Sequence record: NC_061421.1
Length of the DNA stretch: 64,000 nucleotides
Strand: one strand, 5' to 3'
The first letter of the stretch is position 1, and every line of letters begins with the position of its first letter. The notes beneath the pieces are model-generated. The model was not told the DNA's origin, made no database searches, and was given only the letters and a program-made list of their open reading frames with translations. The position numbers and the translations under genes are program-made. Of the stretch, positions 1,765 through 60,367 are shown one piece after another.

Positions 1765-1840
1765 TACATTCCCCTCTTCGTAATAAATATAACTTATATT
1801 AAATCGGATTTAACCGTTACATAGAGTAACAAGATAAAAT

Positions 1841-1868
1841 AAAAAGAGGAGCAAATGCTCCTCTTTTT
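1841..1868 (-). terminator. Intrinsic terminator-like hairpin after the protease gene
   Basis: AAAAAGAGGAGC-AAAT-GCTCCTCTTTTT. Confidence 0.8.
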
Positions 1869-1869
1869 A

Positions 1870-2616
1870 TTACCATTTAGAGACAAGACCCGTTTTACCA
1901 GAAATAAACGGAGTACGATCCATCTGACGAATAGCATCAACCGTGGCTTTGAAACTCGACTCCACGGAGACCAAACTTTGGTCATTGGCCATACTGCGAA
2001 TAATCGCTGGTTGTACCGGGACAATCAGTGCCGACTCGCAAGACGGTGACATGTATTTGTTTGCGCAAGACAAACCGGGTTCGTTTACGAGATCCCAGGT
2101 AATAATGTTATCGACGTATTTACGAACCTTACCGCCAACCACTCTGTCGGTCGCCATACTGCGAATACTGAACGCCAGATTCTCGTCTGGGTTAGACATG
2201 ATTTTCTCAAAATCTTCACGTCTGGCTCCCGTAGAACAAATCTCACCCATGATGGCGCAAATGCGCTGACCGTTAGGCAGAACGAAATTCGGCACAACCC
2301 AAACCTTGCGGATATGAAATGCCCAGTTACGTTCATCAATGGTGTGGATACGTTGAATGAATTTACGATAGTCGGCGTAATCGTATTCTTTGGGGTGACC
2401 CCATTCGCCGCGTAAATACCCTTCTCTCACGCGTTTCTGGAAAAGACCATTCTCCGCTAATATACGCTCAACACGTTGCTGGTCATATACCGCACCAATA
2501 CTGTTGTCGAACTCTAACGCCCCTAAAATAACTTCAAGGTAGTTGTTGTCCAGACGTTTAATATTCCCTACTCGGTTTACACCTTTCAGTGCTGTTACCT
2601 CAAATGACATCCCCAT
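1870..2616 (-). CDS. Prohead (head maturation) serine protease, phiKZ gp175 / SPN3US gp245 type
   Basis: Catalytic-triad motifs LRGEWGHP (His), LAFSIRS (Ser), ITWDLVNEPG (Asp); located next to vRNAP genes. Confidence 0.92.
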   Translation of the reverse strand: MGMSFEVTALKGVNRVGNIKRLDNNYLEVILGALEFDNSIGAVYDQQRVERILAENGLFQKRVREGYLRGEWGHPKEYDYADYRKFIQRIHTIDERNWAFHIRKVWVVPNFVLPNGQRICAIMGEICSTGARREDFEKIMSNPDENLAFSIRSMATDRVVGGKVRKYVDNIITWDLVNEPGLSCANKYMSPSCESALIVPVQPAIIRSMANDQSLVSVESSFKATVDAIRQMDRTPFISGKTGLVSKW

Positions 2617-2619
2617 GGC

Positions 2620-3348
2620 TTACCACCGCACAATATTAGAATGATTCATGAACTCATACGATAGCAGACCCGCCTTACGTTCTTTGGCCTGATTGAATTC
2701 GCTTTCCGATAGCGGGAACATTTCAACCTGACTTTGATCGAAAGGTTCTTCTTTATACTTTTCCAGGGCAGGGATAATCATTCGATAAAACCCTCTTTTC
2801 AGATCGAAGAAGGGTGAGAATTTTACCGATGGGCTGTCAACCTGAATCAGTATTCGGGTTTCAATGGCTTTACTGTAGTCGTCTTTGATGACTCTGAGTT
2901 CATCGATGAAACACTTTCCGACAACACGGGAGGGGTATCGTTGATCTTCAGTGTCGACGTTGACAAGCCATCTTTCTTCTGACCACTCTGCCATAGGGCA
3001 GATGACTTTCGTCGGACGGAGCGAACCTTCAACGGACAACGCATAAATCGTATACCCTCCTAACCATTCGTCCTTGCCCGCGCAATGTGCTTTACTGTCC
3101 ATGAAATCCCGCAACGCCACGCCATAACCCCGTAAGCAATCAATGATTGTAATCCCGGTACAAACCCGTTTGACGGATTCATCTTCTCCGTTCATGGTTC
3201 GTTGGATCTCCCGAGGAATAAAAACCGGGATATTGGGATTAGGAGAGATATGGTAAAGTGTGCGGTGATGAGTATCGACTTCGAGCTCATTAACGGCGTG
3301 CTCTTGTTGTTTACTGATGAAACTTTGAAGTCTCTCGTATGGGCTCAT
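2620..3348 (-). CDS. Hypothetical protein with an ADP-ribosyltransferase-like N-terminal motif pattern
   Basis: LYHISPNPNIPVFIPR...ED...RVCTG...CL...EERWL; C-terminal LSYE followed by a short tail ending in W. Confidence 0.55.
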   Translation of the reverse strand: MSPYERLQSFISKQQEHAVNELEVDTHHRTLYHISPNPNIPVFIPREIQRTMNGEDESVKRVCTGITIIDCLRGYGVALRDFMDSKAHCAGKDEWLGGYTIYALSVEGSLRPTKVICPMAEWSEERWLVNVDTEDQRYPSRVVGKCFIDELRVIKDDYSKAIETRILIQVDSPSVKFSPFFDLKRGFYRMIIPALEKYKEEPFDQSQVEMFPLSESEFNQAKERKAGLLSYEFMNHSNIVRW

Positions 3349-3349
3349 G

Positions 3350-4075
3350 TTACGCCCTCAGTAAACGTTCGATCGGTTGGGTTACTTCGTTCGGGTTAAC
3401 AATAGCCGAATCCAGACCATCTCCGGTATAACTCCCCGAAATTTTCGCAGTGGTATCGGAAGACCCATCCACAACGTTACGTAAAGGTATCCAGGTGAAC
3501 GGCGTAGTACGCAGCTCACTGTAGCTGTGGATATGCTCACGTAAAGGAACTTTACGGTTACTTTCAATACGGGCTAACTGGGCGATGATCATTTCACCGA
3601 TAGTCGGTGTCGCAACCAACTTTGTTCCCGTATACTCTTCGGTTTCCGCAAAGAAGCTACCTAACGTAATGTAGTTGTAAAAGAACGGAATCCTTCCTCG
3701 TGCTAAGATCTCTTCGAACAGGTAATAAAGAAGACCGTTGTCTTTTACCAAATCGATGCTTTTAACCACCGTGCTACCGGGACGGAAATAAAAGTCATAA
3801 TAGCTTCGTCCAGCATATTCGAGTTGACGAATTTCCGTCGGTGTAATTTCCATCATACTCGGGGTGGTAGCAACCGCAAAATCACCCGCTTCGCTACAGA
3901 TAGCAAAGAAGCCGATGATCATAATGCGTTTGCCCATACTGATTAACTGCTTCGCGCGAAAGGACTCTTGGATCACAATCCGGCAGCCGGTCGTGGTGAC
4001 CAGACTGCCGTTTGGGAGTTCACGTAAAGTCGCTTGCAGCGCATCGGCATTGTGTTTCCACTGCGCGATATTCAC
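3350..4075 (-). CDS. Virion RNA polymerase beta'-like C-terminal subunit (SPN3US gp244-like)
   Basis: C-terminal LRNVVDGSSDTTAKISGSYTGDGLDSAIV resembles the beta'/RPB1 C-terminal region; lies between the protease and the other vRNAP genes. Confidence 0.7.
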   Translation of the reverse strand: MNIAQWKHNADALQATLRELPNGSLVTTTGCRIVIQESFRAKQLISMGKRIMIIGFFAICSEAGDFAVATTPSMMEITPTEIRQLEYAGRSYYDFYFRPGSTVVKSIDLVKDNGLLYYLFEEILARGRIPFFYNYITLGSFFAETEEYTGTKLVATPTIGEMIIAQLARIESNRKVPLREHIHSYSELRTTPFTWIPLRNVVDGSSDTTAKISGSYTGDGLDSAIVNPNEVTQPIERLLRA

Positions 4076-4086
4076 TGTTCGACTCC

Positions 4087-5619
4087 TTAGTACACGGTGG
4101 CGTCATCCTGTTCGATAATACCCACTTTCTCTGCCTGTTTAAAAGTCAGGACATCGAAGTTAGCCACAAGCCATTTTGCCAGATAACGGATGGCCGCAGT
4201 ATAGGCAGCAGTCGTGCCGTCCTGATCGGAATCCTGCATTTCACTTTCTACGATATCGATAATGTCTTCGGCATCGATGAACGTGAAGATGTGCTGGCAG
4301 ACTTTCTGTTTGACCAATTCGAACAGATTGGGATCGTTGTCGATGTTCCAATTCGCGTAGAACTTACCGGACTTCAGATCTTCCATCACTTTGTTCAGTG
4401 CCGCTTCTTTACTGAACCCGCTTGGCAGTTGATCTTCATTGAGATTGTTCAGCGCTTGCGCCAGTTCCGGTACGAAACAGTTCGAAAGACGTTTCAGGAA
4501 CGTGTCATGGGAATAACGTTGACGCTGAATCTCAAGCGCCTGCCAACGTTTCAGGTTTTGCTGGTCGTTGGCAATAAACTGACCCAGTAAACGTTGACCA
4601 CCGCGCGGGTCTAACACGCCACCGATCACGCTTTCTGGCGTCAGTCCCTGAGAAAGTCCCTGGCGATATACCGGACCGAATACCACAATTTCCGCGTCTT
4701 CTGCAGAGGTAGCTACTTGGCTTTTTCCGGTGAAACGAATGATCATCTGACCGCGGCGGTTACAACCACTTAGCCAGCCCAGACCATTTTTGATCAGATA
4801 GCCGTATTGCAGCTTCATCGCATTGATCGCCGCCTCGTACTCGGGTAAAGTCATACCCGTACCCGGGAGCGGGTCTTGTGACATACTGTCAACCAGGAAA
4901 TAGACCACGATGCCCAGATCGGTCAGAGAAGCATCACTGAATTTCCCTTCGCAACGTTGACCGTCTTTTTGTTGGACGAGTTCTGAAACGAAGCGAGTCA
5001 CTGGGCAGATTGGGGTAATCGCACAGTTGCGGAAGAGGACGTTGTAAATGGAGACAATCGTATCGGCGCCATATTTTGCGATCGCGTCGGCCAATGCGTC
5101 GTCCAGTTCACTCACGCCAGTTTTCATCCCGTCAATTAAATCTACGTCCGTTTTTTCCGGGGCGTTTTTAATACGGGTAAAAAGAGGTGCGTTGGGTTTG
5201 AACTGGGCAAACGTATCAACTACGTAAGGGTCGTAAATGATCGGTGCAGGATCGTATTGCGTAATAGTGAACTCTTTTGGTTCTACGCCTTTCATCCTGT
5301 CCAGAATTTTACCCGTTACATCAGTGATCAGTGGTACTACCGTGTTGCGGACATACCCGATCTGACGCAGCAATGCGCCGCCAACAACTTCAACCGCGCC
5401 AGCGACTGCACCTTCATGCGGTTCAACCATCCCGATGGTACGTTGGGAGTTATCAAACAACACCTGGTCATACGCTTCCAGTGAAGGTTTGTGACTCTGG
5501 AAGAACGGGAGCGATTCAGCAACCGGGCTGAATAACAGAGACCCGGTGCGCGGGAAAAGGAATAACCCTTCGTTACTGACTACCGTCTTCGCGAGGGCAA
5601 TAGACTTTTTGTTTAACAT
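4087..5619 (-). CDS. Internal head/ejection-type virion protein (SPN3US gp243-like by position)
   Basis: 510 aa; candidate protease site PSLE|A near the N-terminus; TGATG coupling to the upstream gene; synteny. Confidence 0.6.
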   Translation of the reverse strand: MLNKKSIALAKTVVSNEGLFLFPRTGSLLFSPVAESLPFFQSHKPSLEAYDQVLFDNSQRTIGMVEPHEGAVAGAVEVVGGALLRQIGYVRNTVVPLITDVTGKILDRMKGVEPKEFTITQYDPAPIIYDPYVVDTFAQFKPNAPLFTRIKNAPEKTDVDLIDGMKTGVSELDDALADAIAKYGADTIVSIYNVLFRNCAITPICPVTRFVSELVQQKDGQRCEGKFSDASLTDLGIVVYFLVDSMSQDPLPGTGMTLPEYEAAINAMKLQYGYLIKNGLGWLSGCNRRGQMIIRFTGKSQVATSAEDAEIVVFGPVYRQGLSQGLTPESVIGGVLDPRGGQRLLGQFIANDQQNLKRWQALEIQRQRYSHDTFLKRLSNCFVPELAQALNNLNEDQLPSGFSKEAALNKVMEDLKSGKFYANWNIDNDPNLFELVKQKVCQHIFTFIDAEDIIDIVESEMQDSDQDGTTAAYTAAIRYLAKWLVANFDVLTFKQAEKVGIIEQDDATVY

Positions 5620-5810
5620 CAGACAATCCCCTCTTGTACACGGCGGGCGGCGATAGCAGCGCCAATAGCGGCGGCCAGATCTTCTTCGATGTTCGCACCG
5701 TCTGGAATTCTGAGATCTTCGCTGCGCGCATTCAGCATGACGCGGCGGCCCACCTCAAGAATATTCGCAACGCTGGTTTGCGCAATTTCTTGCAAGCCTT
5801 CATTATTCAT
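5619..5810 (-). CDS. Small hypothetical (probable virion) protein, 63 aa
   Basis: SD-like AAGG upstream; its stop overlaps the start of the 510-aa gene. Confidence 0.65.
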   Translation of the reverse strand: MNNEGLQEIAQTSVANILEVGRRVMLNARSEDLRIPDGANIEEDLAAAIGAAIAARRVQEGIV

Positions 5811-58756: not shown

Positions 58757-60367
58757 TTAATTACTGATTTCGTCTTGTACTTGGTCAAGGAGCTCAATGT
58801 TTTTCGGGTTGCGGATAAACTTCCCGGATTCGTCGGTGTGGGCGTAAACGTTTAGCCGTCCACGACCGTCGGGAATACCTTTGGCGAAATTACACACTGA
58901 GCCACACTCCATGATACTGGCGTGGAGGTGATATGCTGCTTCATTAGGTTTGAAGCTTTTTGTCTTCCCTTTACCAATAACTGCGTTGACTTGACGAATA
59001 GCGATACATGTATGCTTGAAGATCATGTTGTCGCCGGGGTATTGTACCGAGTTCAATTCGCCGTGACCTCGCTGAATGCCTAAGAAAGCATTCGTTGTCA
59101 GGAAACTTGAAAGTTTCCAAGTCAGACGTTTAAGTCGGAGAGTTTTCTGTTCTTTTTCCAGTTGCCATGTAAAGTTGAAAATACTCTCTGTAATGCCCGA
59201 TAAAGCATAGCGCTTCACTAAGAGATACTTACCCCACATGTTACCGGAGTTATCGTCTTTAAGACGATCCTGAATCGTTTCCAGGATATGGATAAACAAC
59301 TCGTACAAGTCGTTTGCCATAATCCCTTCCTGACGAAGGTTTTTCTTTGTTTCTCCGTCGACGTAACTGTCGAGCGACTTGAGATGAAGATCCACTTTGT
59401 TTAGCAGTTTCCCTTCGTTCTCATTTCCTTGGTGTAAAATGAACCCCATGATAATACGCCATGTATCAGGCATGTCGATATATTGCAAACTGAAACGGTT
59501 AGGATAACGGTCAACCACGTAGAAGAAATGCGTGGCCAGCAGTTTAACCCCAATGTTCTCTGTTGCTTCACGAGGAATGATCAACGCAAGGTTAGTCGGT
59601 TTCCAGTCGGAGATCGCTCGGCGGCGCTCTGGCGGCGGAAGACCTTGTGTAGTGTAAACCACATAGTCTTCTATTGGGTATTGCTCACGGAGGTTTGCGT
59701 GGTTCTCCTCTATCGCGACGTCAATCCCATAGAACCGTTTGAACGTCTCGGTCACTCCATATTTACAGAAGAGATAATGACCAAGGGTAGAATGGAACTG
59801 TTTACTTTTCCCTTCATTCCCTGTTTTTCCCTGATAGATGTTACCGTAAACAACGAAGGATGGGATAGATTCCCCGTCCTGTAGTAACGTATAGATACTC
59901 CGTTTTAACGTGAACTTGGCACGGAAAAGAATCGTGAAAAGATCGTTTCCGGCAACCGAGAACACCAGGTCGGCAAGAATAGGGTGAATCGTTGCACGAC
60001 TACCGCCGAGCCAGATAGTTCCTGCTTCTCGAACAAACGGGATGTTGATATTACGCTGGAGAATGTGCGTGCCCTGAAAACGTAACTTCATCTCGGACAT
60101 CACCGCATCGGTTTGTGCTATGTCGACTTCCCCTCTTCGTTCGGCTTTCTCATTTCCCTTGATAATCGCCTGTGCCTCTTCGTAAGGCGTTAACCGGCGC
60201 ATTCCTAAATACTCTACGTCGGGCGGGTAATCTTGCGCTGCACATTGCGCAATACGGTCGACATACGCCTCTGCGTCTTCCATGTCCTTTACAGCAAACC
60301 CGCCGGCGATATCCGGGTTAAACTTCGGTAAAGGATCTACGATATCATCGAACAGTACGTTATCCAC
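58757..60367 (-). CDS. Non-virion RNA polymerase beta-like N-terminal subunit (phiKZ gp123 type)
   Basis: P.FNPDIAGGF start, NIPFV, HYLFCKYGVTETF, LHASIMECGS...GRGRLNVY; second gene downstream of the capsid gene. Confidence 0.85.
   Translation of the reverse strand: MDNVLFDDIVDPLPKFNPDIAGGFAVKDMEDAEAYVDRIAQCAAQDYPPDVEYLGMRRLTPYEEAQAIIKGNEKAERRGEVDIAQTDAVMSEMKLRFQGTHILQRNINIPFVREAGTIWLGGSRATIHPILADLVFSVAGNDLFTILFRAKFTLKRSIYTLLQDGESIPSFVVYGNIYQGKTGNEGKSKQFHSTLGHYLFCKYGVTETFKRFYGIDVAIEENHANLREQYPIEDYVVYTTQGLPPPERRRAISDWKPTNLALIIPREATENIGVKLLATHFFYVVDRYPNRFSLQYIDMPDTWRIIMGFILHQGNENEGKLLNKVDLHLKSLDSYVDGETKKNLRQEGIMANDLYELFIHILETIQDRLKDDNSGNMWGKYLLVKRYALSGITESIFNFTWQLEKEQKTLRLKRLTWKLSSFLTTNAFLGIQRGHGELNSVQYPGDNMIFKHTCIAIRQVNAVIGKGKTKSFKPNEAAYHLHASIMECGSVCNFAKGIPDGRGRLNVYAHTDESGKFIRNPKNIELLDQVQDEISN

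Follow-up and report, generated by a model that had tools for sequence, protein, structure and literature searches.

Gene gp089 (MOC16_gp089; 2620..3348, minus strand) lies in the window analysed here, a stretch of 64,000 nucleotides (nt) of sequence record NC_061421.1. The window is 100% identical to vB_KpM_FBKp24 (phiKp24), a Klebsiella jumbo phage of 307 kb that forms a nucleus and encodes chimallin and PhuZ. The gene is a 242-amino-acid (aa) open reading frame (ORF) annotated as a 'hypothetical protein', and its sole PHROG match was phrog_5043 (E 3.3e-38), whose function is unknown. We propose that gp089 is a very divergent enzyme of the ADP-ribosyltransferase (ART) fold with the key residues H33, C63 (or S/T) and E125, and that it is packaged in the capsid and acts at the start of infection. 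We put the chance that this reading holds in full at about even. A capsid-carried enzyme seemed probable because the ART fold is predicted, the key residues are kept, and the relative in the Salmonella phage SPN3US has been proven to be a head protein.

Nucleus-forming jumbo phages have to get through the first minutes of infection while their protective shell is still absent, and to our knowledge little has been learnt about the injected proteins that are active in this period. If our proposal is true, a conserved enzyme that is borne in the capsid and uses nicotinamide adenine dinucleotide (NAD+) would be a concrete candidate for counter-defence or for an early takeover of the host. SPN3US gp246 and Goslar gp211, two virion proteins that lack an assigned function, would then also gain a predicted fold and a candidate role. 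In addition, a tail motif common to gp089 and the neighbouring prohead protease hints at a docking signal that has gone unrecognised.

Conservation and predicted fold

A profile search against 1.84 billion representatives (E up to 1e-3) placed about 487 clusters, formed at 50% identity, in the gp089 family. Most of them had about 240 aa. Conservation was counted in an alignment of 136 diverse members, whose identity to gp089 ranged from about 21 to 96%. P45, E125 and W127 were invariant (136/136). R61 was found in 135 members, H33 in 134 and the terminal W in 130. The positions kept in at least 90% of the members were H33, E55, R61, G74, G98, P112, G186, K222, L229 and the C-terminal W. Position 63 was C, S or T in 124 members (78, 32 and 14, respectively). 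The preliminary description of this DNA, made from the letters alone, had quoted the motifs LYHIS, RVCTG, EERW and LSYE and a final W. All four motifs and the terminal W242 were verified codon by codon, and the motifs are beyond chance because they were kept across these diverse members.

AlphaFold2 modelled the whole of gp089, with the family alignment, at a predicted local distance difference test score (pLDDT) of 91.9 and a predicted template modelling (TM) score (pTM) of 0.88. Residues 20-178 alone were modelled at a pLDDT of 93.8. In the model, residues 20-178 (approximately) form the ART-fold core, 138-193 a beta-meander and 215-234 a C-terminal helix, and the tail to W242 is flexible. 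Both the whole and the core model were compared exhaustively with 48,161 PDB representatives by VIA-align. Among the matches listed for the core, 50 of 50 had an ART-superfamily or ART-like fold. The search with the whole-protein model agreed, almost all of the matches listed being ART-superfamily chains. The rows for the core included TreX (values of 6.7, 3.3 A and 103) and a Tpt1-like chain with 20% identity (6.3, 2.7 A and 81), which was the best-superposing chain among the matches listed. Scabin and AvrPphF ORF2 (6.2 each), EcPltA (5.9), and CARDS toxin and pertussis S1 (5.7 each) were also present. Lower rows contained ParT, RES, MbcT, Arr, DarT, diphtheria-type toxins, IcmQ, PARPs and the anti-CRISPR chain 6kyf, which we take to be the ART AcrIF11. 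A language-model search returned Arr-type ARTs alone among named clusters (score 0.94, lead-grade by the tool's own standard) and, by structure, a RES-domain cluster (TM 0.41-0.49). The split beta-sheet core of the ART fold, in which helices follow the strands, was recognisable in the model by structure comparison. Because the structural-search lists were one-sided and the language-model matches were of the Arr type, the predicted ART fold of gp089 is well supported; the family is very remote from all described ART families. The fold had first been assigned by eye; two high-confidence models and an exhaustive search that returned nearly all ART-superfamily chains agree with that assignment.

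Three of the motifs had been described as spaced like an ART catalytic core, and in the model they do appear to fall at the positions of the ART triad. All are encoded on the minus strand. LYHIS (residues 31-35, nt 3244-3258) lies on beta1 and provides H33 at position 1. RVCTG (residues 61-65, nt 3154-3168) lies on beta2 and provides C63 at position 2. EERW (residues 124-127, nt 2968-2979) provides E125, the putative catalytic Glu, at position 3 at the start of beta5. Strand 30-35 carries H33, strand 61-65, with helices after it, has C63 at its middle, and E125 opens strand 125-128. In TreX, the triad residues are found at the end of beta1 (R15), the centre of beta2 (S54) and the start of beta5 (E100/E102; PMC11606950), and H33 stands opposite R15 by the structural-alignment ranges. 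Position 2 of gp089 corresponds to the S of STS or the Y of H-Y-E; the conserved Y99/Y102 of the family are on beta3, not at this position. Judged from the secondary-structure map and the alignment ranges, H33, C63 and E125 would make up an atypical H-[C/S/T]-E triad. This triad matches that of neither the H-Y-[EDQ] clade nor the R-S-E clade, and two residues before the Glu the family has T or S. The invariance of the His and the Glu argues, by inference, for catalysis.

A few family members are fused to SUKH, GNAT or Pol-beta-type nucleotidyltransferase modules. In a metagenomic jumbo phage (L009:6001-9180, plus strand), a 1059-aa protein has the ART-like domain as its last 210 residues; this protein occupies the same slot before the protease, has a weak SUKH (SMI1_KNR4) match and lacks a terminal W. 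Fusion to GNAT and a neighbouring GNAT gene are features typical of effectors that modify the host. The links to GNAT (loci L012:6001-7791 and L013:5120-8595, both plus strand) were independent: one is a GNAT fusion (P0127) and another a 785-aa 'acetyltransferase' relative in BFVD. A GNAT-HNH gene also lies directly upstream of the 864-aa member P0104. Architectures similar to that of the 1059-aa protein, but of 580-840 aa, were seen in several clusters (P0103, P0106, P0124, P0129, P0139 and P0155). Neither a second family copy nor an Arr-family match was found in the phiKp24 genome, and two family patterns, run against contigs of bacterial and archaeal genomes, turned up no close relatives. 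In Erwinia phage RAY, the family profile (positions 65-137) also matched weakly (E 1.8e-4) at a second site, the 59896-60114 region, distant from the protease operon.

Head location of relatives, operon and C-terminal tail

SPN3US gp246 (SPN3US_0246), a 209-aa protein encoded immediately downstream of the protease, is a member of the family (profile search of the genome, E 1.9e-18). Compared with the gp089 family by hhalign, it scored 99.0% (E 9e-18, 171 columns). It keeps the H, the C, E-x-W and other conserved residues and is without the C-terminal tail. This protein was classed as 'Head' (PMC10052503); virions yielded about 107 spectra and tailless heads about 122, at a coverage of 73-87%. 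Its initiator Met was removed (P1' = A), and it was considered 'unlikely cleaved by gp245' (PMC10052503); the P1' A agrees with the translation made in this analysis. The Goslar orthologue, gp211 (YP_009820908.1), was reported in the virion proteome with 4 peptides, 22.6% coverage and an estimated 3.3-7.7 copies per virion. Comparatively, the virion RNA polymerase (vRNAP) subunit gp210 had 5.6-13 copies and the protease about 160, and the preparation also contained PhuZ and chimallin at more than 100 copies. A gp089 orthologue was not listed in the RAY/Deimos-Minion proteome, an analysis of crude lysate too shallow for its silence to be informative. Virion presence, which had been suggested for gp089 from its sequence, was thus borne out for relatives in two other phages, SPN3US gp246 being a head protein and Goslar gp211 being found in virions.

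The gene is tightly packed. GAGGG, a Shine-Dalgarno-like sequence, stands 5' of the gp089 ATG, and the gaps to the upstream gp088 and to the protease gene are 1 nt and 3 nt, exactly as first described. The identities given to the two neighbours were also right. The product of gp088 (3350..4075, minus strand) is a homologue of phiKZ gp176, SPN3US gp244 and Goslar gp210 (phrog_2926, E 7e-72; tblastn to SPN3US and phiPA3). It has been suggested that SPN3US gp244 forms the C-terminal part of the vRNAP beta' subunit (PMC5105663), and the Goslar paper lists gp210 as a vRNAP subunit. The S80 prohead protease is encoded by gp090 (1870..2616, minus strand; Pfam PF20034, E 1e-62), the last gene of the operon. 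A terminator-like hairpin with a 15-base-pair stem (1838..1871, minus strand) lies directly 3' of the protease stop codon and marks the operon end, so gp089 is the penultimate gene. On the other side of gp088, the ORFs 4087-5619 and 5619-5810 (both minus strand) correspond by synteny to Goslar gp209 and gp208, and also to SPN3US gp243; the larger ORF alone was scanned against families and matched phrog_3841. Goslar gp209 and gp208 were among the unexplained proteins with more than 200 copies per virion in the Goslar study, and SPN3US gp243 is a head protein with high spectral counts.

A gene order that runs from vRNAP beta to a protein of about 500 aa, the gp176-like protein, the gp089 family and the protease was common to Goslar, PCH45, RAY, Ea35-70, Moabite and the metagenomic phage. 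In SPN3US, phiPA3 and the phiKZ-like SL2, the gp176-like gene directly adjoins the protease gene. The preliminary description had given this adjacency correctly for SPN3US and had suggested that gp089 may be an insertion. The latter did not hold, because SPN3US gp246 stands on the far side of the protease and the order with gp089 is shared by several phages. No family member was found in phiPA3 at the profile-search sensitivity that found gp246; its gene 207, an extra gene of the same module, was considered and proved unrelated to the gp089 family. SL2 has a weak short relative, gp038, away from the protease (E 7e-8). This 154-aa ORF of the Pseudomonas phage (L043:2323-2787, minus strand) lies within a block of small genes, matches the part of the profile from the H motif to GY alone, and had an E of 1.5e-3 in the BFVD fold search. 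The phiKZ-like phages, which are otherwise without the family beside the protease, may have a minimal relative in this protein.

LSYE (residues 229-232, nt 2653-2664) starts the C-terminal tail LSYE-FMNHSNIVRW (residues 229-242, nt 2623..2664; both minus strand), which was modelled as disordered with a pLDDT below 50 at 240-242. Across the family, the end takes the form LLS[YF][ED]..P[PA][SFY][ALS][KRN]W-COOH; in the model it follows a long helix and is flexible. The S80 protease clade, which is unrelated to the gp089 family, ends similarly, in ...[LVI]-x-[RSK]-W. The phiKp24 protease does end in W (...LVSKW), as had been noticed, and so do 34 of 43 relatives; 6 more have a W within the last four residues, and the phiKZ-type proteases (phiPA3, SL2) are without the terminal W. 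In the phiKp24 genome, 8 of 356 ORFs end in W, and the others among them had no informative family matches. The similar W ends in the protease clade and the rarity of a terminal W in the genome make a shared docking motif plausible. Judging from these sequences, the '...[KRN]W' tail common to the two families is probably a short motif for docking, which not every lineage needs in order to enter the head. We also considered the terminal TGG as a mere ribosome-binding site for the protease gene, and rejected this because the residue before the W varies widely and members away from the protease also end in W. A 261-aa ORF outside the window (G000:C1:69714-70499, minus strand) ends in ...GDFDNDVPW; this acidic tip with an aromatic end is reminiscent of the C-terminal interaction tails of the single-stranded-DNA-binding protein (SSB) type.

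LSYE had also been read as resembling a site for the prohead protease. [SAG]-x-E occurred in the last 16 residues of 35% of the members, compared with a background of 14%. The case for cleavage of gp089 at LSYE is weak, because such a site is poorly conserved and the SPN3US head relative is both tail-less and uncut. The C-terminal part of the protease contains two invariant Glu in the alignment of the phiKp24 clade, E194 (in PSCE-S) and E219. SPN3US protease gp245 removes its own 64-residue C-terminal propeptide, and the other known substrates of this protease lose N-terminal pieces at A-x-E. By analogy with the propeptide removal in gp245, E194 and E219 are likely autocleavage sites.

Readings of gp089 in infection

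Head-packaged phage ARTs are an established kind, and T4 Alt is a head-packaged ADP-ribosyltransferase of the R-S-E type. In our proposal, gp089 would be made from the late operon with the vRNAP subunits and the prohead protease, and would most likely be built into the capsid interior at low to moderate copy number. It would leave with the DNA and be ready at the very start of infection, when it might ADP-ribosylate a macromolecule of the host or of a defence system with host NAD+, as T4 Alt does. The tight operon with its terminator supports this proposal, as does the synteny with the protease, which is kept across distant phages and in the 1059-aa fusion. We infer the NAD+ binding and catalysis, the packaging in phiKp24 itself, the ejection and the nature of the target.

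Several points weigh against this proposal. Sequence and profile searches of Pfam, NCBIfam and the PDB returned nothing for gp089 or its 136 relatives. The hhalign comparison of the family with Arr and KptA was insignificant (KptA probability 0.15%); the Arr and KptA alignments were small, with 8 and 4 sequences, respectively, and were built from genome matches. The check with AlphaFold and Foldseek that had been suggested for the by-eye assignment gave a split beta-sheet core and ART-like top rows, but no significant Foldseek match in the PDB for either the whole or the core model. The best of the insignificant rows for the core were pertussis-like toxins, RES, LT and C3-type ARTs. Concerning the virion, the Goslar gp211 signal is weak evidence because of its low copy number and the PhuZ and chimallin in the preparation. 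The phiKp24 literature contained no virion proteome of this phage. As these phages transcribe with RNA polymerases of their own, there is no obvious need for a target of the Alt type, that is, the host RNA polymerase. Finally, the triad is atypical, with Cys, Ser or Thr at position 2 and His at position 1, and the phiKp24 lineage deviates from the consensus at the well-kept positions R57E, P60K, G70D, D119M and Y131V.

These last two features also suit a non-catalytic head protein of the ART fold, a possible but unlikely alternative. Such a protein would be a scaffold, e.g. an adaptor that loads or holds vRNAP or positions the protease, and its conserved residues would serve binding. The constant linkage to the vRNAP-subunit and protease genes is consistent with this role, and so are the Goslar copy number, which was similar to that of the vRNAP subunits, and the pseudo-ART domains (TASOR, PARP13 and IcmQ) among the structural neighbours. 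However, the Glu and the beta1 His are strictly conserved over about 487 clusters, to identities as low as about 22%, as expected of an enzyme, and the GNAT and nucleotidyltransferase fusions point to enzymatic effectors.

If gp089 is an active NAD+ enzyme, its substrate might be other than a host protein, which we think quite unlikely. It would then be either a nucleic-acid ART, like DarT, Scabin or Tpt1, that modifies ends or bases of DNA or RNA, or a plain NAD+-consuming enzyme (NADase), like RES, MbcT or Tne2, that shifts the NAD+ level early in infection. Among the best structural neighbours, Scabin, pierisin, Tpt1, RES/NatT and MbcT act on nucleic acids or only consume NAD+, and the Tpt1-like chain at 2.7 A and 20% identity superposed best. 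The conserved basic residues R50, R61 and K222 are also consistent with such a substrate.

It seems improbable that gp089 is a cytoplasmic late protein that is not packaged in phiKp24, with the Goslar signal being carry-over and the shorter SPN3US form alone being head-borne. The Goslar estimate falls under the authors' 5-copy list, in a preparation where PhuZ and chimallin exceeded 100 copies. In Ea35-70, RAY and Moabite, neighbouring genes carry virion-protein annotations but the orthologues are labelled 'hypothetical', and the RAY proteome list does not include the orthologue. Nevertheless, purified tailless heads contain the SPN3US relative in abundance, the RAY analysis was shallow and used crude lysate, and the rest of the operon encodes head-internal proteins. 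We consider it just as improbable that gp089 travels with vRNAP and, inside the vesicle of early infection, acts on nucleic acids or the polymerase of the phage itself. On this reading, Tpt1-like ADP-ribosylation of DNA or RNA ends might, for example, shield the injected genome or early transcripts, and the tail would be a new capsid-docking signal of protease and cargo.

Comparison with known systems

SPN3US gp246 is like gp089 in belonging to the same family, carrying the H, C and E-x-W motifs and being encoded beside the S80 protease, and gp089 matched the profile of this phrog_5043/gp246 family over its core. It differs in having 209 aa, in lying downstream of the protease, in lacking the end of the C-terminal helix and the LLS...W tail, and in being uncut. 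An annotation of gp246 as ART-like was not found in the SPN3US literature consulted on its proteome.

T4 Alt and gp089 share the ART superfamily fold (predicted for gp089), are encoded with head genes, are capsid-internal (probably so for gp089, going by its homologues) and are plausibly delivered with the DNA. However, T4 Alt has about 680 aa, an Arg on beta1 and an N-terminal propeptide, whereas gp089 has about 240 aa, a His on beta1 and no propeptide. T4 Alt is processed; the SPN3US relative of gp089 is not. Nor does phiKp24 depend on the host RNA polymerase to transcribe its own genes. No sequence or profile similarity of gp089 to Alt/Mod was found via Pfam, PHROG or BFVD. The protein is related to T4 Alt no more closely than by the shared superfamily. 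More generally, the R-S-E clade has Arg on beta1, S-T-S on beta2 and [QE]-x-E on beta5, and gp089 does not belong there, having His on beta1 and T/S-x-E on beta5. The TreX/Tre1-type and Scabin-type toxins are about 11% identical to gp089 and have R-S-ExE in place of H-[C/S/T]-E. Compared with TreX and Scabin, gp089 has an extra 60-residue beta-meander and a C-terminal helix, and it has no Rhs or secretion context.

The beta1 pattern His-x-[ST] is common to KptA (LYHGT), Arr (FYHGT) and gp089 (LYHIS), and so is the compact core. In contrast, gp089 lacks the N-lobe of Tpt1, and its position 2 is neither Tyr, as in Arr, nor His, as in KptA. Position 3 is Glu in gp089, hydrophobic in KptA and Asp in Arr. 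The H-Y-[EDQ] clade (PARP, diphtheria toxin, Arr and DarT) does not include gp089: the His and Glu are present, but position 2 is mostly C/S/T. Nor is gp089 a member of KptA/Tpt1, as it had no PF01885 match and the NAD lobe alone superposes, or of the RES-domain NADases, which are recognised by an R-E-S motif and an Xre antitoxin partner. As far as the predicted fold allows, the gp089 family is a divergent new family among the head-borne phage ARTs.
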